The notes beneath the pieces are model-generated. The model worked only from the letters and a program-made list of their open reading frames with translations, was not told the origin of the DNA and did no database searches. The translations under genes and the position numbers were made by a program. A stretch of DNA of 64,000 nt from Basidiobolus meristosporus CBS 931.73 (taxonomy: Eukaryota > Fungi > Basidiobolomycota), in contig MCFE01000006.1 in the NCBI GenBank assembly GCA_002104905.1, positions 1-64,000 on the forward strand. The letters run 5' to 3'. Of this stretch, positions 1-59,811 are shown in pieces. Position 1 is the first letter of the stretch; each line of letters opens with the position of its first letter.

Positions 1-324
1 ATATCGGTGCTACTCGGCGTAGATCAACTTATGAATATGGCGAGAGCGAGTGTTAATATCATAGGAAACTGCCTGTCTTGTGTGGTGGTTGCCAAGTGGG
101 AGCGAAGGTTTCGTACTGAGCCCATATCTACCTCAACTGTAATCTCTACCGCCTCGAAAGACTACGATGAGGATGCACACAATACTGACAAAACAAATGA
201 GATGGAGAAGGGCTCATTTAAATCAGACCACGAGGGTTCCCAAGATTATCACCTATCAAGCCAAAGCTCTCAGAATCACGACCGTGAAAACATAAACATC
301 AAGGAACATTCTATATCCGTATAA
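1..324 (+). CDS. 3' end of a dicarboxylate/amino acid:cation symporter (DAACS/SDF family, GltP/DctA-like); 5' part lies outside the window
   Basis: LLGVDQLMNMARASVNIIGNCLSCVVVAKWE matches the TM8 signature of the family (DctA-type [20 protein letters not shown]..VVAKW), followed by a polar cytoplasmic tail. Confidence 0.85.
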   Translation: MSVLLGVDQLMNMARASVNIIGNCLSCVVVAKWERRFRTEPISTSTVISTASKDYDEDAHNTDKTNEMEKGSFKSDHEGSQDYHLSSQSSQNHDRENINIKEHSISV

Positions 325-1915: not shown

Positions 1916-2828
1916 GTTGTGGTCTGTTAACAAGCCCTCACGGGGCGGATAGCGGGGAAATAAGGATAGGGATGGTTAAACAAACCAAAGATAAAATCTA
2001 TGGGTATGAGTAGCAAATTCCCAATATACATATTAGAGAAGGGCATGGATATCCTACCATGTGGAAATGTGGAAGTAGAAGGACAGGACGCCGGGGAAGG
2101 CTTGGTCAACGAGAGTAGGTAACTGCGATTCGAACCCCGATATCCGGCCTTTACGCAGTACCTAAGTTCTCGCACTTGGCTTCTTGTACTTGGGTCAACC
2201 TCCCACGTAGCTGAAACAACCATGTTAACATGTATTTTATAGACAAAAAATGTAGGTATATCATGAGAGAAAAATAAACATCACAATAATAATACACAAG
2301 TCCTATATATAATCATACAGGGAAACGATCGAAAAACGCTGTCTCTCAGACACAAGGATTATACCCCACTACTAACAAAGCCATAAAAACCCTCAAATAC
2401 TATGTAAGTAAAACCTAGGTTAACGTCGCTCAGCTAATAACGGAGCATTAGTAACGAAAACACATGTGATGGTCGCTGGTATCAACGTAACAAACATAGG
2501 GGATCATCCTTCGTTCAAAATGGTCAAAGAGATAATGCCAAATAAAGGAAGCAAAGCAGAAAAAATGGGTATATTGCTTCTAAACATCTTGCCCAGTCCT
2601 CAATTACCCTTACAAACTGCATACACACTGATTTTTCGCACTACTACTACACACTTGACATACTTGGGTCGTCAAAGCCTTTTCAAACGACGTAGGTGCA
2701 GACAGTTTTATTGCTCAAAACTGTGACTTGACTGAATCGTTTGTTTGGTAGCCTAAAGATTGGTATTGTGCATAGATCGATTGCATACCTACAGCCCAAC
2801 ATGCGGGATTTTGTGCAAAAAACCGAAC

Positions 2829-4192
2829 TTAGATTTCAGCAAAAGCAATAGTTTCATTGATCGGGAGATGGACACCTGGATTAGTGAACTCCTGACCAAC
2901 CTGAACGTTGGCTTCTTTTCTAAAGACTAGGGCACACGAAGATCCACCGAAGTGGAACGTTCCTAGCTCTTGACCACGGTTGACATGCTGTCCTTCGTAC
3001 ACGGTGGCCTGGCAAGAGGAGATCTCGGTCATGCCAATGGCGATAAAACACATGAGACCGATATTCTTATTGTCGGCATCAATAAACAACAGTTGGCGAG
3101 CGGCGGTGTTGGCGAAGAAGGTGAGGGACCTCAAATAGGGGGGAACCTCGCCTTCAGGGGTATCTTCTCCGATGAGAGATGGTGCTTGGGCGAAGTAGGT
3201 GCCGGGAACGTCGACAATTTTCAGAACAGTCCCGCTCACGGGCGCGTGCCAGCGGTGGTAGCCGGTAGTGTTAAGGAAGGACTGAATGACAAGACCGCCA
3301 ACAAAGGAATCAACGGACTTGTCACCAGCGAGAAGGTGAACGAGGGAGTATGCTTCATCCTTGATGAACAGTTCGTCGGTCTTTTTGACTTCGGTCTTAA
3401 TGGCGTAGAGTGCTGACTCGCAGGCCGAGCTGATGCAGCGAAGGTCTTGAATATCACCGGTGGGGCGATCGATGGCGACGTCGCGATAGCGGCGTGTGAA
3501 AAAGTCTTCGTATGATGTAAAGCCCCAGGCAGGGGCATTCGGGTCACAAATAAAGACATCCCAGAATTTCCTTTCAGATTCGTATTTCTCCATCATTGCG
3601 CCAACTGCCTTATCGCTGAACCAGCCTCCGTTGTTGGCGTTCAGAGTCGAAGTTGACTCAGGAGACAAAAGGTACAATTCCCAAGTCTTCATCATCTGTT
3701 TGAAGTGGTAGTTGAGGGACTGCTTTGTAAATGCAGACAATCCGCCTTGGGTATTCATCACTCGAGCCATGATCATGTACATTGGTGGCCCAATGCTGCC
3801 AAAGCTGGGTGCCTTGCGGAAGATATCGTTGAACATGAGGAGCATCTCCTGGTAGCTTTTCGGCTAGAAAGGTTTGAGAACGTGCACAAATGCTAAAAAA
3901 ACTTCGCTGTACTCACAAATTCTGTCATTCCATCAAACATGCGCACAATATCGGTGAATACGACAGCGTCGCCCTCAATGAAAGCCTTAAACTCCTGAAT
4001 GGGCTCGAGAAGTGGCGGCATGTCAGGGGCAGTGGTATATGGTGTACCAGGGCCGGGCATCCTCTTGGCTTCAGGGTGAATCCTTTTGTGGAGATCGGAC
4101 ATCCAGTCATCGTAGTCTTTCTTACTTGCAGGAAGCCATCCAAACCGACGGAAGTCCTCTATGGAAGGACGTAGAGTAGTGGGTGAAGTCAT
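2829..4192 (-). CDS. PsiD-clade pyruvoyl-dependent decarboxylase (phosphatidylserine-decarboxylase fold; L-tryptophan decarboxylase-like), 436 aa, 2 exons (3917-4192, 2829-3863)
   Basis: Joining the two ORFs over a 53-nt GT-AG intron (3864-3916) gives a continuous frame ...DGMTEF|PKSYQEMLLMFNDIFRKAP.... It carries YHRWHAPV and the self-cleavage motif FHFGGSS, plus motifs I recall from Psilocybe PsiD (LEPIQEFKAFIE, GPPMYMIMARVMNT, VPGTYFAQAPS, PPYLRSL, IGMTEIS). Confidence 0.9.
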
Positions 4193-4399
4193 ATTGTTAG
4201 TTGGAGATGGAACAAGGGTTGTCCAGAGCCAACACCTTTATAGCATCTGGAGCAGGATGTCCTGAGCGGTGTCTGGCCCTTATGCAAGGCGGCCTATTGT
4301 AACTTTTTCTAAGGAGACATGATATTTCACGAGAGAATGCTGTAATACTACCCTCTTGGGAAAACTTATTCAAGTGTTCCCACAAAGGTTCCTTACACT

Positions 4400-5700
4400 A
4401 CTAGTAATGTACCAATACGATGCGTGTTGTACAATCTAAGCCACTATTATCTTGTGCATAACATCTAAAAAATGGTTTTGGTAAGTACCTTTGAAAGGCA
4501 TTTGTGTTCAAGCGGTTGGTGTGGATTGTTGTAGCTCATGGTACGGATAGAGATAGAGTATCGCTAATAGGTACTAAGAACAGGTTCATTCAAGAGGGAT
4601 TTCAAGAACTAGGTCAAAGGAGGGCTCAAGGGTATTTACCAGGAGCTGGGATCGATAACTAATAATTGATCTTTCTTTACCTACCTCGAACCTTTACCCT
4701 CGGCCCAGGCTTAACCAAGTGTGTACAATAGTGGGCACTAGAATTCTTAGGTAACGTTAACTGGCTTTCAGGATCCAACTGTAACATACTTCCCTTCTTA
4801 AATGGATTCTTCCCCACAAGAGTCATCAGTTGGACAACAAAACCGCACAGGTGTTTGTCCATTTGGCAATTTTTAGTCGATCTTGGTGTACAAAGTCTTG
4901 TTTCACAATTCCTGGTGGTGTTGATAGCTGATATGTGTAGGATGGTCGTTGTTCTTTTACAAAGTATGGCCCGCTCCAATGTGGCTCGAACATATTCCTC
5001 TTGTTCTGTACTAGAACCCATAATTCAAGACCGATCAGGTTATTGTCAGAATTCCTATCCTTGTCTTTGATTTGTTGTGCTTGACTGGCTAGCTTGTTGT
5101 CAACATCATAACAGGCATGGTCCATCTCTTCTGGTCCTCTTCTGCAAGACTCTTTGTAGTCCTCATTGATATCTAGGCCCCAAAGGTTTGGTGGGAGGGT
5201 ATTGCCAAGTATCATCAATTCTATGCCATATACCATAAAGAATGGAGGCTTATTAGTGGCACAAGCAATGCCTGGTGTGAGAATATGTCTCATCTATAGG
5301 TGCCTCTATGGACATATATGATGAGCATCTGACTTATCAGTCCATTAAGACTTTCACTAGCTCCATTGGTGTGTAGGGTGGTATGCTGATGTTTTTGGGA
5401 TGATCAATTGCATCTTTTTCTGGATTAAACTCAAGACCTTGTCAATAAAGTTTACACCTGCTGGTTGAGATTTCTTTTGACCTAACCCTAAGCTGTAACC
5501 TCAAGGAGTAACAGTGCCCCATTGCATTAGTCACCTAGAACAATGTGGATAGGTTGGATTTGCCCTTGTGTAATGTTTTGTAGATACTAATGTCTATGAG
5601 AAGATCAGCCATAGAAGGCCAGCAGAATCAGATTTGCACTATCTGCCTTGCAGCATACCTTGCAGTCAGCTTTCAATATATCAATTAGAAAACCACTGGA
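4400..5700 (-). mobile_element. Degenerate Ty3/gypsy LTR-retrotransposon integrase fragment
   Basis: ORF 4826-5293 contains the GPY/F-type integrase C-terminus (FEPHWSGPYFVKE..YTYQL..G..VHQDRLK). An upstream frame gives HTTLHTNGASESLNGLI, a decayed version of the HPQTNG..ER.N core motif. No LTRs identified. Confidence 0.7.
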
Positions 5701-5879
5701 TTCATTTTTTCATTATCACTTTTAATATGTTTAGGACTTTCACCCTAATGCCTCAAGAACAACTACATATTTTACCAAAATTATAATATTCAAGGTACTC
5801 AGCTATAGCTGTAGGGTTCACTCTAATACCATGGAAGTATTTTATTTACAGCTAAATAATCTGGCCTACATATTGACAA

Positions 5880-6215
5880 TCCCCAAGAGAAATCTCAAAC
5901 TAGGAATTTTTCTGATTTTTAGCTGGTATTCTGCTTGTATTCTTATGGTATGCTGCTTGTATTCAGATGGCATTTTTCTTTCAAATTTTCAGTTTCAACT
6001 TTTGGTGGAAAAAGTGAGCAGCTGATTACAAAACTTGGCATGAATGCTAGTTTACCTAGTCTCCTCCTGGAGAATATCTGCTTGGCAGCCCAAAAGCTAG
6101 TATCTGAGAACTCAGAGTTGTCAGCTTTGAGAAGCCTGAAATTTACCTTTTACTGTGTTGATATTCTGCTTGCCTTTTCTCAGTTTCATTTCTTAGAGGA
6201 TATGTTTGTATGTCA
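5880..6215 (-). repeat. Dispersed repeat, copy 1 (inverted relative to copy 2 at ~12650-12945)
   Basis: The reverse complement reads ...ttctcaaagctgacaactctgagttctcagatactagc...ccaggaggagactaggtaaactagcattcatgccaagttttgtaatcagctgc...cagaataccagctaaaa, which aligns by eye with the copy at 12.7 kb. Confidence 0.8.
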
Positions 6216-7907
6216 GATCTATTCCCTGGCACAATCCTAGTAAATAGCTCCTTGCACAATAGGATCAAGTGTATTGTCACATCTTATGCAAGTCATGCTC
6301 CATTTGGTGGTCAAGACTAACCATTGAAATATAAAGATGCATCTGGTAGGTGAAATCCTGCAGGCACTTGATTTAATGCACCCCATCCAACAATTGTTAT
6401 TTTAATCATACTATGGGTATTTTGAGCAATTGGCTTTACATCTAGTATAGCGGCTAAATGAGTCACTAGCTTAAATACTTTGTGTATAGTCTGCAAATTT
6501 TGGAATAGTATGTCTGAAATCCTGGCCTGGGTTTTCCAACAATACTTTTGCTAACTATGAGGTATTCAGGACATGATGAAAACCCAAAATTTCCAAAGGC
6601 CCCCAAGCTAGGTTCATATCCTCTTGAAGCCTTAATATAGGTATTTTTTTTGTTGACTTTGCCAAGATTTTAAAGTATAAACTTCATTTTACACTCAACT
6701 TATCATTCATTGTAAGCCTGACAATCTAGTAGATGTCTAAATAACTGCCAATAGAGTTATCTGTTTCCCAGAGACTGTTGTATCCAAGAGAAAAGTGGAA
6801 TTCTAGCGTTATCTGAGAAAGCAGGGAAGATATTGAAAAGAATGTTGAAAGAATTTTAGCAATAAAGGAAGTACTTGGTAGTGCAAGTATAACATATAGC
6901 TTTTGCTTCATAACATATTTTATGCAAAAGTAGTGCTCAAACTATTATGTTGCCTTGCAGGAACAAGCAAGAATTTCATGTTTAAAGGTCCCAGATGCTT
7001 GTGTGTCAAGTTTGGAGTTGTTTGGACAGCGCTGAGATGCTTTGTGTGCTGTAGGAGCTTTAAGGACATTGGAAGTGATTGAGAGACTAAGTTGAATATG
7101 TGCTTTATACTCAATGAACTATGGAATATAAGATTGGTATTTATACTTTTTCACAATCTTGGCAGTACAAGCACATAAAATATTTTTAGCAAGGTCCCAG
7201 AAGCCTGTGTGCAAAGTTTAGCATGCTAGGTGCCATAAGCTCTGGAGGTTTCATTACTTTAATTGGAAGCTGATGAGACTGGGGTTCTTCAGCATTGTTT
7301 TATTGAATTGCTGATTATACTCTTGGACCAGATATGTTGTATTGAACTTATAGAGCTTAGCACAGGCATTACAAGCTGCATTTGCTAGGGTGAAAGCCCG
7401 CAGAGACCAGTCACAGAATAATTCCCAGTGCATATTCTTGGAAATAGTTTCCATGTAATGCATTGTTGGTAGAGTTCTCACAAGATGGTTGCTGCTTTTC
7501 AGAAAAAGTAAGCTCAAACCTAATATTTACAATAACAGGCTCAGTAGAGCAAGTCATATATCTGTCCATCTCAAAGATCCTAGTTTTTAAGGTCATAGCA
7601 TGTTTTGTTGCCTCAAAGGTATTTGGCTTAGATTTAAACTGTTGCAAGATTCTAGGGAGTATTAAAGTTAATTTGAAGAACTAAAGAATTGCATGATATT
7701 CATTTGCAGCCTTATTGAGTACAAGTAGAGTACTTATACTATTAGAGAAGCTTTGTGAGACAAGGGATTCACAAAATCTCAAGATTTGTTGCAGGAAGCT
7801 GTGGTCAAAGTATGGGGGTTTTTGGATAAATTTGAAAATATTTATAACTATCAGACCTTTACTAATTTTCGGAATTTTGATAATATCTTATGGACTAAGC
7901 CATTGGT

Positions 7908-8069
7908 AAATAGCTCATAACTTAGCAATAAACCAAGTAGAGCCTTACATTACAAGAATGGTTTAGGTGTAAACTAAATACTTGCTACAAATAGTTCATA
8001 ACTTGGCAAACAGCCAAGTTGAGTCTTATGTTATATAAATGATTTATGTGAAAACTAAATAGTTCCAGC
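7908..8069 (+). repeat. Two imperfect tandem copies of an ~81-bp unit
   Basis: aaatagctcataacttagcaataaaccaagtagagcctta... at 7908 and aaatagttcataacttggcaaacagccaagttgagtctta... at 7989. Confidence 0.8.
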
Positions 8070-8843
8070 ATTAACAAAGGTGTTTTTGTTGTAAGTTTTT
8101 TGAAGATATTGGAAGTGGTTGGGAAAATATGTTGATTGTGAGGTTTTCATATGATGATTTATTGAATGCAAAGGTATAAGTACTACGTTTACATGGTCAT
8201 GGCAAAACAAACTTGTATAGTGTGTTTAGGGAGTTTGTGGCTGTTCGGACAACTCTGAGAATTTTCATGTTCCGAGTACCTGATATTTTGGTGAAAATAG
8301 TGCAGTATTGACAAGAAATTTGGTCAGGATTCTCGGAGATTTGTAGGTAATGATCTTTGTAACTAAGTTAGGTGAATATTTAGGTGTAATTACCAAATTT
8401 ATAAGTCTCATTCTGTTGTTTGCTGAATACTCATGGTCAGCTGTATTGACTCTTTTTCAATTTGCACAATATAATCACATTTTTTCTACACGTGCATATT
8501 ATGGACAAAACATTGAGTGTTCTGGTCCTATTTGTTTCAGGGAGTCAAGGGTCACGATCTGGGGGTGTTTTTCAGGAAGTCATGTTTTATCTGCACCAAG
8601 TGAAATCAGTACTTTCATCATTCCATAGTGATGCTATTGATGTTGCTATTCAGTAGCTTGTAACTAAACAGGGTTACCTTAGGTGAAATAGGCGTAGGGA
8701 AGCAAGAGAATTGCAATTTGGGACAAGCAACTCATGAGAAATTGGAACTTTGAACCCATTTATTGGAAGTAAATACCTTAATGTAATAATCAAATACAAT
8801 GAAATCCTCCCCAAATGAAGCACCCCATGTATACAATACTTTC

Positions 8844-10330
8844 CTAAAGCTTCGCCTTCACCTGCACAAGCTCACTTCCATTCTGGAGCAGCTTGGCAGC
8901 GTCGTTAACCATGTTGTCCACAATCACCTTTGCAGGGAGAACCTCGTTAATGAGCGCGGCTACACGGCCAATCAGCCAAGGACGCGTCTCCATGAAAATT
9001 TCGGGGTGTTGCTGAAGGTCGTGCTCGTAGGGAAGAATACCCTTCGATGTGAGCTCCTTGATCTCTGTCTGGCGGTTGTTGTTCCTAAAATCTCAGTACG
9101 GTTAGGATGTCAAACACTGGCTATTTGTGAGAGCGTTTCTTACCAGTTATCGACATATTCTGTCCTGCGCACACGTAGAGGACGTCCAGTGTAGATAAGG
9201 GTTGTCACGGCGTCTTCGTAGCTTGCGCTAAGGAGTTCCTCCTTGTGCTTCTTTGGTGCGCCAGCTTCCACGCTGGCGACGAAGCGAGTACCAACCTACG
9301 AGAAGAATTGCAATTTTAATATAAATGTAATTAAATGCGCTTCTTTTTCTCAGTCAAAACATACCCAAACGCCAATCGCTCCGTACATGAGGTTCGCGGC
9401 GAGGCCACGACCATCATAGATAGCACCGGCGGCAACAACGTATACTGGAGCCCCGGTCAGTGGCGACTTGTGGCCCTTTACTGCGTCAACACAGGCGGGA
9501 ATGAGGATTGATTGCGGGATATCACCGGTGTGTCCACCGCCCTCTCCCGCCTGAGCGCAAATTAGGTCGACGCCCTGCTCGAGTGCCTTGGGAACATGCT
9601 TCGGGTGACCGACCATCTAAAATTCGTGCAAAAAATCATATTTACTAAAAAAGAAACATAGGAGTAGCCGATGCGGGTGCATACGTTCATGACAGGAATG
9701 CCAGCCTTATGTAAGCGCTTAACGACATGCTTTGGTGGAACACCGACGGCGCAAACGAAAAGGGAAGACTTCTCATCGATGATGATGTCAATAAGCTCGT
9801 TGAGCTGACCCTTTTGATAATCGTAGTTCGTCTTGCGCGCGCTACCACCGACTTGGGGAAGGAGAAGGTCAACACCGAACTTACCGTTGGGGTCCTTCAA
9901 ATGGGACTTGAGCTCGTGAATCTGCACAGATGGGTTAACAAGGTAAAAGCCGCAGCATTCACACTATACAATCACCTGAGAACGAAGAACTCTGAACAAC
10001 GAATATTATTATGTCAGTAACTGTTTAAAAGAAAGCGTTTAACGCGTAAACAAAGCGGTACGCACTTAGGAGTGTATCTAGTGCACAGAGTTAGCTCAAT
10101 GACTTGAAAAGTGCCTGGAATTGTTTACTTACCCATGACCACCAAGGACACCAATACCACCAGCATTTGTAACAGCCGCTACGAGCTCGGGACCTGCTGC
10201 AACGTTCATCTGACCAATATCATCAGCCTTCCCGAATGTCTCCAAAATTGAAAGATATACTTACGCCCGCAAGCATGATCGGGTGCTGAATGCCGAAGAG
10301 CTCGGTGAGGGGTGTCTTGATAACGGACAT
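8844..10330 (-). CDS. Nitronate monooxygenase / 2-nitropropane dioxygenase family flavoprotein, 350 aa, 8 exons, C-terminal PTS1 (AKL)
   Basis: Exons 10265-10330, 10133-10209, 10066-10077, 9976-9991, 9685-9921, 9365-9616, 9144-9295 and 8844-9084 sum to 1053 nt in frame. Motifs: HPIMLAGMNVAAGPELVAAVTNAGGIG, AQAGEGGGHTG, VVAAGAIYDGRGLAA, VWVGTRFVAS, TGRPLRV. Confidence 0.92.
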
Positions 10331-11699
10331 GGTTGCTTGTGTGAGGAGGGGAAAAGGTGTGGAGCGTAGTTAAGGTTCAAGAAAGAGAGAGCGTGGTCCG
10401 GTTTAAGTTGGTTAAGAGAAGACCCGGCTAAGTAGCGGACGGGGGCGGCACTGGTCAGAAAGCAGGTGAAACCGGCGCCCGGAATTACCGGAATTGCGGA
10501 GTAAACGAGGCCAACAGTTGGGCTCATGCCCCTTCCGTTGGCATCATGCCATCAGCCACCCAAGTACACTGTCTCGGGATTGGCTGCATTCAAACACATG
10601 AGATAAGTGAGATATGATATTAGTGCGCTATTCTCAGACGTTCAATATAACTTCCATCAGTAAGATCTAGTTACATCTTGAAGTCGACATTGGATATGGA
10701 ATTGAACATTACATTAGTCCTTAAAAATTAGCAATGAATGGACAAGAAAATGCCAGTCTTAAAGCTAATGGGAGAATTAAAGATGTCACCGGGGTGTGAG
10801 TTACAGAACAGTCATAATTATCATTACAGTGCAGAGATTAGGTGGTTAGCATTCAAATCAACACAAACAAGAAACTGGAGGAGTAGCAACAGTTGTGTTA
10901 CGATGCGGCATATTGACATAGTGATTCTCAATTGCAGCGGTGTTAATTACAAGCCGAGGCCGGAACTTTCGCATACGAACCCATTCGCTTGCCGTGGGCA
11001 GTTGAGCGTCCTCAACTTGATGACTGGTTTGAGTGGGGCAAGGAGTGAACAATGGGAGATAATTAGCCATTATATAGCCCATGGCAGACAATTCCGAGTC
11101 TAGGTCAAGTGGCTCGTGGAAAGGATATCAAGATATATAAGAAGCCGGCAGAACTTGAGTTAACTGTAGGAAAGTGTGATGGAAAAGTCAAAGTGGCCAG
11201 AATAGAAAATGCAAGTTGGATAGTTGATTACGGTGATAGTTAGGATATAGCGGGAGAAGTTTAAGGAAAGGTTAGTGACTTGTCAAGTGAAAAGTCGGGG
11301 ATCTTACCACTGTTGTGGCTGGTTACTCCTTATATAGGATATTGGCAGATATGCATTCATCCCAAGACAAGAATTCAATCGAAGTCTCCCGCAATACCCT
11401 CTGTCCTGAATCATATCAATATGTGGTGGCATTTCTATACCAGACATTATGGTCAGTAGAATCAAAATCATTGGTCAAATTGGGGGGAACGTGTGTCTGG
11501 CTGAGCTTTGGTTAGTTCTAAATACAAGCATGACCCCAGACTTCGGAAGAAAACGATGGTAGTGGCAACTGGTTGATCGTCTATTGCCACTATTACTTTT
11601 GTTTGTTGCAGCGGGAGGACAAATATCTGAAATGGAAAGTCAACTCCTATCGGCGAACCGCAGTTGTCCCGCTACAAAAGGAAGGAATGGCTACTCGGT

Positions 11700-14400
11700 G
11701 TCTTATGATTGCCTCACATGCTAGGAAATTCAGGTAATATCGGGTATCACGATGCATAATTAATTTACGCTGGTGATCACAGTCCAATGTTGGCAGTCAG
11801 GCTTTTTTGGAATCGCGTAGGTGGTTGATGCAGCATGTGTGGTTCCTTATAGGCTCATGGTTATTTCATTACTCAGTGGTGCAGTGCGATAAATGCCAGT
11901 TTTTTAACTACCCAAGCTAACAACAGTACTAATGGAGTTCAGCCGTATATCGATTTAGACATCATAAGACAATGTGGACAAGGGGACGAATCTCTTCACA
12001 TGTTACGATAATTGGTAGATTCTGAATAATATTGTTGCAATCTCAGAAACCGTCGAAACTCTACTACAAATTGTATGCTGACCAGCCTTCACGTTCTAGT
12101 TATATCAAGGCAATTTGAGTCTCATGATGACCTGTGATTCACGACTAAAACCAATGTGTTCTAGGTTCTCCCAGCAAATGTATCTTATGGAGAATTCTAC
12201 CAAAGAGGGGGCAATACCTTAGAATTACTGTCTATGTAGCCAATCATAGTAGTAATGCGCAAAATCACCTACATAGACAATCTGTTTACAACACAAGAAA
12301 AAAGCTCACAAGCCATGCCAGATTAAGTGTAAACTCATCTAGCGTATAATTCAGTAATTGTTTAAAATCGTTTTAAAATGGGTAACTCAAGTAGTATTAG
12401 TATGAGACAGAATCAATGCCCTGAATTTCTTGTGTCTTCAGATATCCCTATCTAATTTCAAAGGAATCTTCAGCACCACTGCTTAAGCAACTTTGATTTG
12501 GCAGTGTTCCTTCAGATGTGTCCCAATATAGTCCTTGTAAATGTATAATTTGTTTTTAAATGTTAACCAAATTGCACAGCCATCCAGGACCTTGCCTAGG
12601 ACCAAATAGCTATAAGAAATACAATGATCCCAGAACCCGTTTATTACTTTTCCCTAAGAAAAAAAATAAGAAAAGACCTGCAGGATACCATTATAATATC
12701 AGCTGAATTCCAAGTTTCTCAAAACTGACAACTCTCAATATCTCAGGTACTAGCTGTTGGACAGACAATCAGTCATATTTCCCAGGAGGAGACTGGGCCA
12801 ACTAGCATTCGTACCAAATTTGGTAATCAGCTGCCAACTACTTCCACCAAAAAATGCAGGTGAAAATTTGAAGGAAAAACACCAGCTGAACACCAGCAGA
12901 ATACCAGCTAAAAGTCGGATGAATTCCAAATTTGAGACACTTCATAGGGCTTTGTATATAAGCTCGTTGTTTGAGGAAAACTTCACTAATACACATCTCT
13001 GGAAGCCAAGCCATCCAAGGGGTGTTGATGTTTTTCAGAATTTCATCTGACTCTTGGAACCCTGCTTCAATACTCCCCTGATAATTTATGAATGAGGAAA
13101 TCGAGGTAACCAATGAGCAAGAGTGATCAGGTCCTCAACGTGGCAAAAAAACCACGAACTATCATAAATTTAATATGAAATAGAGCCAATCATCCCAGCA
13201 TTCTCGCACACAGGTTTATGATGATATACCGCATCAATCTCTCGATGTTAGGGGGGAGTTCTCAAGGTCCATTCCCCAATGGCCCAATCAACTAGCCTTT
13301 GAATCATCTTTCAAGTTGTGTCTGTGAAAAAGAAATTTCTTGTTTAACTCGAGAGCCAAGCATGGATTAATAAGCCTCACATCCATTTCTTATGCGTACC
13401 AGACTTTCCAAAAATGGTATCTCGGTCTTCTTGTACAAGAATCCAGAAGCCACACAATTTTGGGCATGCACGTAACATGGAGCGATATCCAAGTAATCGC
13501 TACATATCCTAGGAAATCCCATCAATCTGAACAGGTGCAACTAGAGAACGGCCAATGAATACATGGAAACAGTGGAATCTTGGTGCAAGCTGACACTTAC
13601 TTCCGCTCTGTAAGGACCAGATAATAATGACATGTCCTAATAATTAGGATACACCAGAATACCCAAGTGAAAATCTATACTTCAACAGAAAATTCCCATG
13701 ACAACAACACCTGAAGAGACCTGCGAATCAAAGGTGTCGGAGAGATATATTGATATGGTGGCTAGCAGGCGAACTTGTAAGGCAACAATTCCTGTTCAAC
13801 CTCAACCTAACGGAGCCTTCACACATCTTCTGAATCAATATGATGGTAATGAAAAAAGCAGGCCAAGGAAACCGGTTCAACTAGCATGCCCAAGTCTGAA
13901 CGCTGTAATGGTAAGATATCAATAATGATTGATGTGTTGGTTTATCGACGTTAAATCTCCCATTAATAAGATCTATTGCAACACTATCTAAATCCTCATG
14001 TGAGAACCATTTTCGGAGAAATACACCATATGGGAAATGTGACACTCATCAAATCCAGGAATGACGAAATGGCAAGCAATAATGTTGTTGACATCTGTTC
14101 ACCCCTCTGGAGTTCGATTGACAATCAGTTTGAAGCATACAGTTTATCACAGAACCCCATCATGGCATCATCCTATTCTCAAACGCAACATATTGCCCTC
14201 AACCACGGAAACCCATCACTTTCCAAAAATCCAAAAGGTGTGGTTGTGGATGTGGATGTGGTCTAGGGGCCGAATGGTTACCTGACCCATCTGTGCTTCT
14301 AAAGTAGCCAGAGTCTTATAATTGGGTAAGCTAACATCACCACTGTTGATCTAGAGTGTACCTGAAGTCTACCATTGGTAGCTATAAAACAACATTGAGA
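11700..14400. other. Gene-free decayed repeat/pseudogene-like tract
   Basis: No coherent ORF and many in-frame stops; contains repeat copy 2. Origin cannot be assigned by eye. Confidence 0.35.
12650..12945 (+). repeat. Dispersed repeat, copy 2
   Basis: ttctcaaaactgacaactctcaatatctcaggtactagc...cccaggaggagactgggccaactagcattcgtaccaaatttggtaatcagctgc...cagaataccagctaaaa, same family as 5880-6215. Confidence 0.8.
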
Positions 14401-53527: not shown

Positions 53528-55639
53528 TTACTGAGGCGACTTGCAGACCTCAGCAATAATTTGCTTTGCTCTTTCATATCTAGCAGCTTGCAATGGACAC
53601 ATTGCAACCTCTCGGGGTTTCCCTCCAGAAAGGTTTTGAATCTTTTCTCGAACCACGTCATAGCTGAAAGATTGGAACCTTGCGTTCATTTCATGAGGGC
53701 TGGTGTTTGGTGCAAAATTGGCAATTAACCAAAAACCCCATTCGTCTACTATGGACAACAACGTTGCTAGGAGTAACATTAGGGCATGAATCAGTAGATT
53801 ACCAATAGAGCTTACACATGCTACATCCAATGGATGTGTCATTTGGGAGTGGTTACTGGTAAACGGCATTAGCGAGAGGACTTTCATTAAGGGATACTTT
53901 CTCTGAATCTTCTCTATGGTATCGGAAGGAACATGCGAATGAAGAATTAAAATGTCACAACTACCAAGTTCGAGAGCGGTCTGCAAATCTTTTGCTGGGA
54001 TTACACTGACATTTTTGTTATCCTATAAGAGTAAGCATAAGAATATGGCAGCAAGGAAGTGAGATCATGTCACATGAGGGGATACCTGATTTTCTTTCGA
54101 GTCATCGGCAACAATTAATACAACGAGCTCAGTTTCACAAGACTCCATTAGGTCGCTTATAATCGACTGAAGCTTCGCAGTATCTTGCTTTTTTTGAGGA
54201 TATAATCGCCGGATGCCAACCATAGAGCGGAGCACCACTCCTGTGCTTTGATATCCAGATTTCAAGTTCATTCCTGTTTGCAGGAGCGATAGGAACCCTG
54301 CTATGTTGTTGCAGGACCATACACCTTCTGTGAAACTTGCACCCAATGCTAATGTCGGCTTCTCTTCAAACACCCATTTAGTGAAGAAGGTGTAGCTAGT
54401 TAAGTGGATCGTAAAATCAGGCTCTGTTTCCCTTGTGGGCATGTAGTTGACATAGATCGGTTTTGCAGATGGCTCTGGCATAAACAGCATGACGGATTTT
54501 TTCTCGTGTATGCAGGCTTTGTGTAGAAAGTCCACAACTACTCGAAATGCATACCTATCATGCTAATACATCACTACTTGCTCGCATCAGGTAATTCACC
54601 ATCACTTACCTCTCGAGAAAGGTTGCTTGCTGTTTTACAATGGTTTCTTCTACTGGATCAGGTCGAGGATATATCTTCAGGCATTTTCTATATGCTAAAA
54701 GGGCTGCTTCGTACAGGATACGTGGGAATGTCAGGAAAGCTGTAATCGGATACCGGACTAAGATGCAGCATAGTGTAAAGCTAGTAAGCGGGTACTGCTT
54801 TCCGTTGAGTATTGCTACAAGTTTTTTGATTTCTTGGGTTTGGTACCCATGTGTTGCTTTCAAGGAACTGTCTTCATCAGCATTTGCATAAACAATGATT
54901 TTGATGTCGTGATAGCCAAATTGGGGATCTCGAAGGTGAATCTCATAACTTCCATTTCGATCATTGAATGGAGATACATGGAAAGAGCGATGGATTTTGA
55001 AAGTTGCATCATAGCTTCAAGCACAAGACAAATTAGAATGGAATTTCGATTTCCTGGAAACCTTACTTTCACATACCCCTTACGCGGTTTCTCCATTGCC
55101 TTGCTGTTGTCCAAAATATAAAGGTGCTTTTCCCCGAATGTGTTGCTGACCTCTAAAACAACGATTTGAAGCTGCTTTGTTCCATCTATTTCACAGCAAT
55201 AACAGTAGTATATGGATAGAGGATTGAAGGCGTATCCAAGAAACCTAGGTGTAGTTACTAACTCAATGCTTTGTATCCTTTCGGTGGAAATTCCCTAAAT
55301 ATGCCACATACATTAGTATAGATATCTGGTGTAATTCAAACGTTGAAGACGCACTCGCTCATGAAGCCTATACAACAGCTTTCTCTTTAAGGTAAAATGT
55401 CTCCCTTCTTTCACTGGAACGTCACCCAAGTAGTCCTTGTACCATAAGGAGTAAATACTCCTTCGGTTATATCCAAACAGCAGATTGCCCCAACTTGAGT
55501 GGCTCTGTGAATCCTCTTCCAATAGATCCAAATTCACCCCAAAGTAGAAAACATCATATGCAAAAGAATGCTTAGAGGGAAGGAATCTCGCGTGATATGT
55601 TTTCCCAAGGTATACAGTATGCGTCTTTGGAAGTGGCAT
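53528..55639 (-). CDS. DUF1365 (COG3496; UfaO-like) protein with long C-terminal extension, multi-exon
   Basis: YLGKTYHARFLPSKHSFAY, TTPRFLGYAFNPLSIYYCY, VLEVSNTFGEKHLY and TFPRILYEAALL..K.LKIYPRP are DUF1365 motifs. The 3' exons splice in frame (..KENQ|DNKNVSV..). Confidence 0.85.
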
Positions 55640-56377
55640 ATTGATTGACAACTTGGTGCCGCTTAGGGCTACTTGAATATTTTCAGCGGGATCTGTGACT
55701 TTCGAATTTGCAGAGTATCATTGGCCAAATCCACTGACGGGTAAGAATCGACCTGGGTAACATGGATAGTGATCAATCAATAGAGGATCGATTTCAAGGA
55801 TTAGGTGGCTTGTACTTTGTGTTCAATTTTCCAGGCTCCGGTGATAGGTATAGACTCCTCATCGGCGATACTGACCAAAAATAATGGATCGGAAGTCCCT
55901 TTAATTAATCACGTTCAACCAATATGGTTTGTACATCATCATTGAGATGGTTTGATAAGTAGTGAGCATCGCCAAATCGAAAGTAGCTATTTTCGATGCC
56001 GATTTGGTGACCTCCACCTTTCTTGATATAGCAAGCACTGTATTGAAACTAGGAGCATGAGTCAAATTTCAGTCACATCGATCTTCCAGTTATGAGGTGA
56101 ATATCTGATCTGGAGTTGTTTCAACACCGCATTACCATGATTTCCTTCCAAGATAACCATCGTAGGTAACCACAATACTGAACTCGTGCAGAAACAAATT
56201 CTTGCGATGTATGGATATAGCTTTCAATTATCATCCGTAGTTCAACATGAGCATTTTCAGACCGTATTTTCAGATCGGGGTGATTGCTCATTCTGGTTAC
56301 AAGGCCGTTTAGTATTTAATTGATGCCTGTCTGACAATCCAGCGCTCAATCATCACCTCCAAGCGCACGTTGTACAC

Positions 56378-57879
56378 ATGGATCTTAGCAAGAAGAGCAA
56401 AATTTTAGGAGCTACAGAATGGTTGGCCCTGAGTGCAAAAAATTTGGTGGTGAACTCGTCGTGGAATCCTCTAGTTACCTTTGGTACCAGTCTTCTAAAG
56501 AATTTCTATACTTTCTACTAACGAAGGCGATTCTGTAGCCCGCAACCTTGTCCTGGAGCTTATGAGCAAGATTGAAAATGGGCATATCTGTATAATGACA
56601 AAAGACTATATCTACGAATATGGTACTTGGAAGGAGGGAAGTGATATGAACGTGAAGGTCAAGGTTCTTGATGACAAATTTTGGATCCGTTTATTGATGC
56701 TAGGAGATTTGGTAAGTATATCTAGTATGATGAGCAAACAAGATGTGCTAACACTCACTTAGGGCTTTGCAGAATCCTATATGTACGGTGAGAGCACAGT
56801 CAACGATTTGGTATCTCTCGTTAAGGTATCCACTGTTGTTTTCGTCTTCATTTGGAACCATATTCTGATCTCTGTGGTCTCAGCTTTTTGTAGCGAACCG
56901 CGAAATACTGAATGATGTACAAACAAAACACTCTACAGCAATGAATATTTTCAACTCGATTATCAACTCGCAGTTTGTTAACTCCATTGCGAACTCTATT
57001 CATAACATCAGTGCTCATTACGACCTAGGAAATGACATGTTCTCTTCGTTTTTGGATGAGACGATGACTTACTCCTGCGCCATATTTGAAAATGAACAGG
57101 AAAGCCTCAAAGATGGACAATTACGGAAACTACACACTATGATTAGAAAAGCTCGGATTACATCTGCAGACCATGTCCTTGAAATTGGGACCGGTTGGGG
57201 ATCATTCGCAATCGAAGCTGTCAGGCAAACCGGCTGCAAAGTTACAACATTGACTTTGAGTATTGAGCAGAAAAAATTGGCAGAAGATCGGATTGCTGAA
57301 GCTGGCTTCACTGACAGTATCACGGTACTCCTATGTGACTACCGTAATATTGAGGCCCATCATCAGTTTGATAAGATTGTTTCAATTGAAATGATCGAAG
57401 CTGTAGGCCACGAGTTTCTACCTACTTTCTTCAAAACGTGCGATCAACTGTTGAAACGGGACAAGGGGATTTTGGCTTTGCAGGGAATCACCATGCCGGA
57501 GTCAAGATATGACAACTACTGCCATTCGGTTGATTTTATCAAGAAGCACATATTTCCGGGCGGTCATTGTCCTTCTGTGACTGCATTGATCAATGCCGCC
57601 AACAAAGGTTCTGAAGGCCAACTGATTTTGGAGAATATGGAGAATTTTGGACCCCACTATGCTAGAACTCTCAGATTATGGCGTCAAGAGTTCCTGGCTT
57701 CCTACGACGAATTGATTGAAAGTAACCAAAACCCTGTCTATGATGACGTTTTCAAACGTAAATGGGAATATTACTTTGCCTACTGTGAGGGGGCTTTTAT
57801 CACCAAGACAATCGGGCTTGTGCAGATGGTGTTCACAAGAATCAACAACACAGAATTTCTAGAAGGTGTACCCCTCTGA
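56378..57879 (+). CDS. Cyclopropane-fatty-acyl-phospholipid synthase family SAM methyltransferase (Cfa/UfaM-like), 449 aa, 4 exons
   Basis: Exons 56378-56483, 56527-56711, 56763-56825 and 56884-57879 are in frame. Motifs: NISAHYDLGNDMF, MTYSCAIF, VLEIGTGWG, DKIVSIEMIEAVG, FIKKHIFPGG, HYARTLRLW, WEYYFAYCEGAF. Confidence 0.95.
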
Positions 57880-58211
57880 ATTTAGACCGTCTCGGAAATT
57901 CTGTAGTCTTATATAATCATTATAAATTTATTAAATATCTAAATAATATAAACCACTACGTCAACTCCATAAACTTACATCGCTTGGTATATTTCACATG
58001 AATATTCTAGTCACAGATAATTTCTCCACATTAGCATGATCATGTCAAGTATTGAATAAATGTTTCAAGCTGTGGCCCACGCGAAATAGTAGCAAACCCA
58101 ACGGCAAGCGCTTTCGTAACTAAATTTACCATTTTGTATCATGTACATTCGTGTATATCACTAAACAAATATACACTTGGTTATTGCCATTCCGATGATA
58201 TTTTATTGAGC

Positions 58212-59811
58212 TTAGTTCTTGGCCTTGTAATTGGCTCGACTGGAAGGTTTTCCTGGCTGTCGACCTGTCAGGAACATGTACAGTAGGGATACTCCCCATA
58301 AGATCAATGCTAACATGATATCGAAGTACCTGAACAACTTTCTGTTTAAGAACGATGCAATACCTTTGGGGGTGTTTCGAATATGAGTGGCATCAATAAC
58401 CTGGAAGGGTGGGGAGGCCCCTAGTTTCAGTGCCACTTTTAGACCAGATGTAAGACCATCTTCGTGGAACCCATAGTTCGTCCATGCTCCACAGAATGAC
58501 GTGTCAGTAGACTGAATCTTGTGAAGCTCTTTTTGAGCTTCAATTAGTCCTTTGTTATACGTAGGATGCTCATAGAGGTATTCCCCAATGATCGATTCCG
58601 GCTGAGGCTCATAAGGGGGATTTAATGTTACGAAGACATCGCCGTATTTTTCAGTATCAATTGATTGTAGGAGGTTCATCCAATATGTCAAGGCAACGCT
58701 ATTGATACTTGAGCCATTAGAGTCCGATGTGGCTAGATAATTCCAACTCGTCCAGGCCTTTCTTCGGATTGGCATTAAAGCGCGATCACAATGCAAAAGT
58801 GCTCTGTTTTTGGAATACAGAACCTTACTGAGAATATCCTTCTCCGCATCAGTTGCTGAACTCCCTAGTATTCGGAGTGTCTGATCACCATGAGTAGCAA
58901 ATACCACGTGATCATATTCATCCTCCTTCCCAGTGCGATCTTTCACGATAGACTTTCCATCAGCAGTTCGGGTAACGGAAATTACTTCTGTTGAAGTACG
59001 AACATCCTTCAATTTTTCAACGACTTTCTTGACATAGTTACGGCTTGAAAATATAGTATTAGATGGAGTGCTGGACAATACACTTGTGATATTTGCTACG
59101 TTACCTTCCGTTCTTGACGGTTAACCATTGGGGACGGTTGGTAATTTGGAGTAGACAATGGTTGTGCATGAATTTGATTAGGGTATAAGCGGGAAACTCC
59201 AGACTACACTTGTCCGGAGGAGTAGACCAGATCGCAGCCGTCATGGGCAACAGGTAGTTTCTTCGGAAGGCTTCCGAGTAATTTCTTCGATCAAGAAATT
59301 CTCCAACAGTTAGCTCACGATCAGGATGGCCTTCAGGTAGGGCTATGATATCGGTAGCTTCGAAGTTGAATTTTATTATATCATACACAGTCCGCCACAT
59401 ATCAACTGAGGTGATATTTTCATGCTGTGCGAACACAGTAAGCAAGTTGTTCCCGGCCCACTCGAATTTACCCCTGTCTCTGGATACGGAGAAGGACATA
59501 TCTGAATTGATGTACTCCACTTCAAGATGCTTGAAGAACTGCAATAGGTTTGGATATGTGAGATTGTTGAAGACGATGAAGCCCGTGTCTACAGGGATTT
59601 TGCTGCCAACATTCTTTGGCTTTGTATTCCCCATTTCTCCTGAGGACCGGGTAGCAATGGAACAGCTTGGAACGCAATAATCAACGGTGTGTGTATGGCC
59701 ACCAACGTAATCATCCTTTTCATATAGAGTCACCTCATGGTTGGAGTGTTCACTCAACGCCCAAGCAGCTCCTAGACCGGAAATTCCAGAACCAATTATT
59801 GCAACTCTCAT
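58212..59811 (-). CDS. FAD-dependent oxidoreductase (COG2907 amine-oxidase-like; UfaD-like), intron 59044-59104
   Basis: MRVAIIGSGISGL (GxGxxG), GGHTHTVD, VDTGFIVFN..TYPN, MSFSVS, PMTAAIWST, WTSWNY, YEHP and FCGAWTNYGFHEDGLTSG; C-terminal hydrophobic anchor. Confidence 0.92.

Follow-up and report, generated by a model that had tools for sequence, protein, structure and literature searches.

The present analysis concerns the first 64,000 nucleotides of contig MCFE01000006.1 of Basidiobolus meristosporus CBS 931.73, a stretch to which we refer as the window, and within it two neighbouring, mushroom-like genes. One encodes a homologue of PsiD of Psilocybe cubensis (the PsiD-like gene) and the other an enzyme of the NMO family (the NMO-family gene); both are intact, lie on the minus strand and stand 4.65 kb apart. 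An original prediction, made from the letters of the DNA, had proposed that the pair was acquired from Agaricomycetes as an island embedded in transposon debris. According to the NCBI taxonomy the source fungus belongs to the Basidiobolomycota, outside the Dikarya, so that the objection foreseen in that prediction, namely a host that is itself a basidiomycete, does not hold.

Structure and products of the two genes

Both gene models were checked exon by exon against two NCBI-annotated proteins of this strain (contig of 268,249 bp), P0001 (K493DRAFT_201776, 436 amino acids) and P0277 (an "NPD-domain-containing protein" of 350 amino acids and the product of the NMO-family gene), in which the exon translations recur unchanged. 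The PsiD-like gene (4192..2829) contains a single intron and yields a product of 436 amino acids; its second exon (2832-3863, minus) is 100% identical to P0001. The product carries a PSDC domain (PF12588, 81.3 bits) and a PS_Dcarbxylase domain (PF02666, 116.5 bits), both over the Pfam cut-off and in agreement with the precomputed domains of P0001, and the solved structure of PsiD (8x4q) matches exon 2 at E = 2.6e-130.

Mapped on P. cubensis PsiD, the protein shows the self-cleavage motif GGSS at residues 398-401, and the triad Glu242/His296/Ser403 is retained as E241/H295/S400. Five residues of the substrate pocket (Y117, F289, L290, Y338 and T374) are identical and a sixth, L112, is replaced by Ile, while the autoinhibitory Trp27 corresponds to W19, within exon 1. 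The roles of the triad, the pocket and Trp27 are taken from PMC11929908, and those of GGSS as against the LGST/GGST processing motif from PMC6121855 and PMC11929908. The beta chain of 8x4q terminates at FHFGG, and the same stretch is present here; bacterial-type homologues carry GGST, not GGSS. The proenzyme would accordingly cleave itself between Gly399 and Ser400, the latter being converted into the pyruvoyl cofactor. Judged by its domains and residues, the product is a PsiD-type pyruvoyl-dependent decarboxylase, and we infer that its most likely reaction is the decarboxylation of L-tryptophan, or of a similar aromatic amino acid, to yield the corresponding amine. The residues mapped here are retained in distant members of the family too, and therefore they do not fix a specificity for tryptophan.

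The NMO-family gene (10330..8844, minus) is built quite differently, with 8 exons and 7 introns of 54-74 nt each in 1,487 nt, and a product of 350 amino acids. The seven introns in 1.5 kb that had been predicted thus agree with P0277, which also confirms two consecutive micro-exons, spanned by the sequence GGHGYTPKVLRSQIHE. The contrast drawn at the same time with the rest of the window stands as well, since the other large open reading frames (ORFs), of 1.6-5.1 kb, are uninterrupted. Exon 6 by itself matches PF03060 at 43.5 bits (cut-off 28), the family to which P0277 is assigned in the precomputed annotation. Among solved structures the closest are FabK-type enoyl-ACP reductases and a Thermotoga "nitroalkane dioxygenase" (E ~1e-36), and characterised class I NMOs match in the structure comparison at E ~1e-21 only. 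By sequence the product belongs to the PF03060 NMO/NPD family of flavin mononucleotide (FMN) enzymes.

Relatives and gene trees

Among the best 120 matches of the PsiD-like protein, all named proteins except its own record and three others come from Agaricomycetes, at identities of up to 74%; Moniliophthora roreri (74%), Pleurotus ostreatus (73%) and Ceratobasidium (72%) are the closest. The three exceptions are two Xylariales proteins (62-63%) and one fragment filed under "Clostridium perfringens". Identity rises to 84% for P0002 and 82% for P0003, two JGI proteins, and is 54-57% for the true PsiD proteins. In a careful maximum-likelihood (ML) tree of the family (58 rows, unrooted), Basidiobolus forms a clade with P0002 and P0003 (support 100/99); Pleurotus and Ceratobasidium join it in a clade of 9 rows (96/87), which in turn lies in one of 18 rows that includes Moniliophthora (99/94).

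Because an unrooted tree cannot demonstrate nesting, eight homologues of bacterial type, taken from metagenome loci, were added as outgroups and used as the root; all are intronless, carry GGST and are 33-42% identical. In the rooted tree the Basidiobolus clade stands beneath nodes of 99/98, 94/92, 100/100 and 100/100 within the fungal family, and in both trees it falls outside the Psilocybe/Panaeolus PsiD clade. Holding the 34 Dikarya rows together cost 62.5 units of log-likelihood and was rejected by the approximately unbiased (AU) test (p = 9.2e-5). With the tree rooted, the Basidiobolus sequence thus lies inside the donor clade and the competing topology is rejected, which is the pattern looked for in horizontal gene transfer (HGT). 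The single intron speaks in the same sense: among environmental homologues, taken as 30 loci or contigs from one metagenome scan, six (L001, L002, L003, L004, L006 and L008) are interrupted by an intron at precisely this site, after codon 92 and in phase 0. On the strength of the rooted nesting and the AU test, there is strong evidence from the sequences that the PsiD-like gene was acquired from Agaricomycetes. This transfer is already known, for Reynolds et al. 2018 (PMC6121855, legend of Fig. 3C) list the branch of B. meristosporus as a putative HGT in their tree of PsiD homologues (TDC).

For the NMO-family gene, exon 6 (84 amino acids) was run in an exhaustive search of representatives, the word search reaching proteins of similar length only. 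The named full-length representatives that it returned were from Lactifluus and Mycena; P0277 was found via alignment of the exons to the Lactifluus protein and then served as query. All named proteins among its best 120 matches are from Agaricomycetes of many orders, at 72-79% identity. A JGI protein, P0287, is 88% identical; it comes from a 1,206-bp contig too short for introns and is therefore probably a transcript. The Agaricomycete sequences form two paralogue groups, one of 350 amino acids that includes the Basidiobolus protein and one of 354 amino acids (59-68% identical). The core AQAGEGGGHTG, which had been put forward as a mushroom-type variant, is shared by roughly half of the relatives collected (221 in all), and the named carriers are all Agaricomycetes.

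In a careful ML tree of 57 rows, the 350-amino-acid group mirrors the species tree, with Cantharellales, Trechisporales and Hymenochaetales followed by the crown. Basidiobolus and P0287 (100/100) are placed within the Agaricomycete crown, beside Boletales (92/93) and beneath nodes of 96/94, 100/92, 97/85 and 99/95. The distances agree with this placement: the Basidiobolus protein shows 77-79% identity and a patristic distance of 0.42-0.55 to the crown orders, as compared with 71-79% and 0.57-0.68 for the Cantharellales and Trechisporales orthologues, and the ascomycete relatives, about 50% identical to it, lie at a patristic distance of about 2.9 from the crown orders.

Intron positions could be compared here through the ends of ORFs on environmental fungal contigs. 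Forty-three fragments begin at residue 135-138 of P0277, the position of intron 5 (136|137). In 10 fragments similarity to P0277 stops at 219-221 and the ORF continues (intron 6), and in 8 it stops in the same manner at about 271 (intron 7). Several of these fragments are 90-96% identical to proteins of Agaricus, Collybia, Athelia and Marasmius, and not every relative has all three introns.

Composition of the locus and origin of the pair

Both genes had also been described as richer in GC and CpG and in codons ending in C or G. Comparison with the other ORFs of the window bears out the codon part, the GC content of third codon positions (GC3) being 0.58 overall in the PsiD-like gene and 0.60 in the NMO-family gene (0.51 and 0.60 in the two PsiD-like exons, 0.60-0.82 in the NMO exons) as against 0.34-0.52 in 16 other ORFs. 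The excess lies mainly in codons ending in C: the large exons reach a frequency of such codons (C3) of 0.37-0.41, compared with 0.16-0.35 for the other ORFs. The CpG part shrinks to a slight enrichment, with observed/expected ratios of 0.75-1.17 versus 0.55-1.1. At a resolution of 200 bp, raised GC is confined to 2.8-4.4 kb and 8.8-10.6 kb, that is, to the genes plus their 5' flanks. Environmental PsiD-like homologues of 70% identity have a GC3 of 0.65, near the values of both genes.

The two GC-rich patches are parted by AT-rich, degenerate repeat DNA (Table 1), in which a relic of the C-terminus of an LTR-retrotransposon (long terminal repeat) integrase can be recognized; it resembles integrase C-terminal clusters with scores of 0.93-0.95 among atlas look-alikes. 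The pair is thus separated by transposable-element remains, as predicted, while its being flanked by them comes down to a single pair of repeats of about 300 bp, of which the window holds no further copies. The two copies enclose the NMO-family gene together with 2-2.6 kb of DNA to either side; they could stem from separate, old insertions of one small element or be the degraded termini of a larger mobile unit. A composite transposon carrying the NMO-family gene between the repeats was considered and set aside, given that the arms are about 80% alike, the ends are fuzzy and no target-site duplication was seen. The pseudogene that the pair was said to abut could not be identified: when 20 additional small ORFs of the flanking DNA were searched against Pfam, the sole result was a BAH match below threshold, at 1556-1870.

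We consider it probable that both genes are resident in B. meristosporus and were gained by fungus-to-fungus HGT of intron-bearing genomic DNA from Agaricomycetes. Agaricomycete genomic DNA, introns included, would have entered the Basidiobolus lineage, and retroelement DNA would later have filled or worn away the spacer between the genes. In the assembly, an SDF symporter, a HlyIII gene, a deacetylase, a urease and others share the contig with both genes. One may ask whether contaminant DNA of an Agaricomycete was misjoined into a Basidiobolus contig, an assembly chimera that the mushroom-like composition and relatives would fit and for which there is precedent in contaminated records of the PsiD family itself (the "Clostridium perfringens" fragment, close to P. 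ostreatus). This explanation appears very improbable to us. The foreign-like DNA consists of two separate, gene-sized patches with 4.6 kb of AT-rich retroelement debris between them, so that a chimera would require four false joins; the repeat copies sit both in the spacer and on the host side past the NMO-family gene, the window is without Ns, and genes of host type flank both sides in a 268-kb contig. Moreover, the best named Agaricomycete proteins are only 74-79% identical, and each gene forms an exclusive clade with its own environmental sisters (82-88%).

Several points weigh against a transfer of both genes from Agaricomycetes. The AU tests for the NMO-family gene are weak, with p = 0.099 when the 350-amino-acid Agaricomycete group is held together, p = 0.081 for all Agaricomycetes and p = 0.044 for the Dikarya, and the groups were chosen after inspection of the tree. 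The sharing of its introns, of which 5, 6 and 7 are covered, is drawn from ORF ends and not from aligned genomic DNA. Absence from other early-diverging fungi is read from the best 120 matches of either protein in a word-indexed search, among which no such fungus appears. The nearest lineages differ, the NMO-family protein going with Boletales and the PsiD-like protein with Pleurotus, Ceratobasidium and Moniliophthora; no linked pair was met in the sampled Agaricomycetes, so that one common donor segment stays hypothetical.

The separate gene trees that had been asked for differ in force: the PsiD-like gene is nested in the Agaricomycetes in a rooted and tested tree, and the NMO-family gene is nested in the crown with marginal tests (0.04-0.10). 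Since ML topology, distances and the deduced introns agree, transfer of the latter from Agaricomycetes seems well indicated, though not formally proven. The NMO tests leave a Basidiobolus lineage outside the Agaricomycetes unrejected (p = 0.08-0.10), and to that extent they would accommodate vertical inheritance, in which ancient, slowly evolving families were retained only in Agaricomycetes and Basidiobolus and lost elsewhere. For the PsiD-like gene this history is rejected by the AU test given above. For the NMO-family gene, which is nearer to the crown Agaricomycetes than the Cantharellales orthologues are, it would demand an implausible slowdown in rate and, in addition, that almost every other lineage of fungi had lost the gene; the shared intron positions, the mushroom-like, intron-rich architecture and the deviant codon composition likewise argue against it, and we hold it to be extremely unlikely.

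Within horizontal transfer from Agaricomycetes, the question arises whether the two genes came together. Separated by 4.65 kb, sharing one strand and showing the same raised GC3, they are explained more economically by a single event or a single integration site, and on this evidence we would give co-transfer a roughly even chance. Two independent transfers from different Agaricomycete donors, landing within 6 kb of each other by chance or at a permissive, repeat-rich site, would account for the different closest lineages in the two trees, for the lack of linkage in sampled Agaricomycetes and on the 30 environmental contigs, and for two gene-sized GC-rich patches split by AT-rich repeat DNA. 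Nevertheless, two rare foreign genes adjoining by chance is improbable, the genes share strand and orientation with GC3 values of 0.58 and 0.60, and their own environmental sisters stand at broadly similar distances (82-84% for the PsiD-like protein, 88% for the NMO-family protein). The sistership of the NMO-family protein with Boletales is itself not firm (92/93, AU not significant), and thus the two trees are not truly in conflict. Two separate transfers seem doubtful to us on balance.

The original prediction had gone further and suggested a small metabolic module for indole or nitro compounds. An NMO gene is absent from all 30 environmental contigs on which PsiD-like homologues lie (0/30), and in the Agaricomycetes listed with both proteins in the best-120 lists the two are found on contigs of different sizes; the exception, Mycena latifolia, has both under one contig size (2.49 Mb) and a PsiD-like copy from a distant clade. 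The linkage expected in mushroom genomes was therefore found neither among the listed species nor on the environmental contigs, the functional module is unsupported and was rejected, and nothing points to the two enzymes working together.

Membership of a psilocybin cluster was likewise rejected. The PsiD-like protein resembles PsiD of P. cubensis (8x4q) in its domain pair, GGSS motif, Glu-His-Ser triad, pocket and N-terminal Trp plug, at 54-57% identity, and differs from it in grouping with the non-psilocybin paralogues of Pleurotus, Moniliophthora and Ceratobasidium, outside the Psilocybe/Panaeolus clade. No PsiK-, PsiM- or PsiH-type gene and no kinase or P450 domain was present among the scanned ORFs of the window, whose methyltransferases are of the PEMT and CMAS types and lie distant from the PsiD-like gene. 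The NMO-family protein, for its part, is like the Agaricomycete "2-nitropropane dioxygenase" group of 350 amino acids in length, identity (72-79%), AQAGEGGGHTG core and ML nesting, and unlike it in being encoded in a fungus outside the Dikarya.

With regard to the PsiD-like gene, organism and inference are the same as for the HGT branch of Reynolds et al. 2018 (PMC6121855), and its transfer is not new; what is added here is the NMO-family neighbour, the anatomy of the locus and the shared intron position, of which that paper makes no mention, together with the rooted and tested PsiD tree. We found no report in the literature of a transfer of the Basidiobolus NMO gene or of its adjacency to the PsiD-like gene. 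In this sense the pair adds one more case, with two genes, to a type of event that is already known.

Basidiobolus usually figures in discussion as a fungus that has received genes from bacteria, and horizontal transfer from bacteria is a kind of HGT already considered for the genus. The present genes are like those in being foreign genes fixed in a Basidiobolus genome, and unlike them in that the donor would be a fungus and the genes bring spliceosomal introns at donor-type positions. Cross-phylum transfers between fungi with retained introns are far less documented than bacterial ones, and two adjacent, intron-bearing genes of mushroom type would suggest that chromosomal DNA has passed between distantly related fungi which meet in dung, in litter and on arthropods. 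The locus offers a concrete case for how foreign fungal DNA integrates and ameliorates, and its decarboxylase, with every catalytic feature of PsiD, is a candidate producer of tryptamine outside the mushrooms.

One may even speculate that a single stretch of Agaricomycete chromosome with both genes was integrated and kept by selection, giving Basidiobolus a mushroom-type route to amines of the tryptamine class, and that the environmental sequences of 82-88% identity represent this island as carried by further species of Basidiobolus. We regard this as unlikely; if true, an early-diverging fungus associated with gut, dung and arthropods would possess such a route.

Mapped features, neighbouring genes and other members of the PsiD family

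The features described above and the neighbouring genes are collected in Table 1.

Table 1. Features of the two-gene locus and its surroundings, in positions of the window
Feature	Position	Strand	Remarks
PsiD-like exon 1	4192..3917	minus	residues 1-92, 92 codons; 100% identical in tblastn with P0001
PsiD-like intron	3916..3864	minus	53 nt, GT..AG, phase 0, between codons 92/93; read from sequence
PsiD-like exon 2	3863..2829	minus	residues 93-436 and stop; PF12588 and PF02666, the triad and GGSS; 100% identical to P0001
AT-rich spacer	4400..8800		degenerate repeat DNA without long ORFs, 30-44% GC
Integrase C-terminus relic of LTR retrotransposon (Integrase_p58_C / SH3_Tf2-1 type)	4826..5293	minus	weak Pfam match, E = 0.008
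Repeat of ~300 bp, copy 1	5878..6196	plus	between the two genes
NMO exon 8	9084..8844	minus	residues 271-350 and stop
NMO exon 7	9295..9144	minus	residues 221-271
NMO exon 6	9616..9365	minus	residues 137-220; FMN/catalytic core, GGH motif; PF03060
NMO exon 5	9921..9685	minus	residues 58-136
NMO exon 4	9991..9976	minus	16-nt micro-exon (..VLRSQ); P0277 match
NMO exon 3	10077..10066	minus	12-nt micro-exon (..YTP..); P0277 match
NMO exon 2	10209..10133	minus	residues 23-48
NMO exon 1	10330..10265	minus	residues 1-22
GC-rich 5' flank of NMO-family gene	10331..10600	minus	~50-56% GC versus 36% just beyond
Repeat of ~300 bp, copy 2	12654..12952	minus	past the NMO-family gene towards host genes; inverted, ~80% identical to copy 1
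SDF symporter, end of gene	7-324		neighbour
HlyIII/PAQR gene	~15.1-15.8 kb		neighbour
Polysaccharide deacetylase	~18.1-18.65 kb		neighbour
AMP-binding enzyme	20.5-22.2 kb		neighbour
Urease	61-63.6 kb		neighbour

Farther along the window, at 53528-59811, there are ORFs for a CMAS-type methyltransferase and an amine-oxidase type, which have no bearing on the pair.

Some observations on the PsiD family were made in passing. The fragment filed under Clostridium perfringens (P0061) is a partial protein of 250 amino acids on a 753-bp contig, practically identical to the PsiD-like protein of P. ostreatus; given this near-identity, it is almost certainly a fungal contamination of a bacterial assembly. 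Ten intronless loci of bacterial type (L014-L017, L019, L021-L023, L026 and L028) read FHFGGST in place of GGSS, are 33-42% identical and lie on contigs of 27% to 64% GC, several of them from human-gut metagenomes; by their sequences they make up a prokaryotic sister family. The two Xylariales (Ascomycota) proteins P0030 and P0052 nest in a clade of Agaricales beside Dendrothele (100/98), which in the tree marks a second cross-phylum transfer in the family and fits the Eutypa branch of Reynolds et al. 2018. In Moniliophthora roreri the PsiD-like paralogues number at least six; three (P0004, P0018 and P0019) share one contig of 128,849 bp, and this points to a tandem expansion of PsiD-like genes in a lineage near the Basidiobolus copy.

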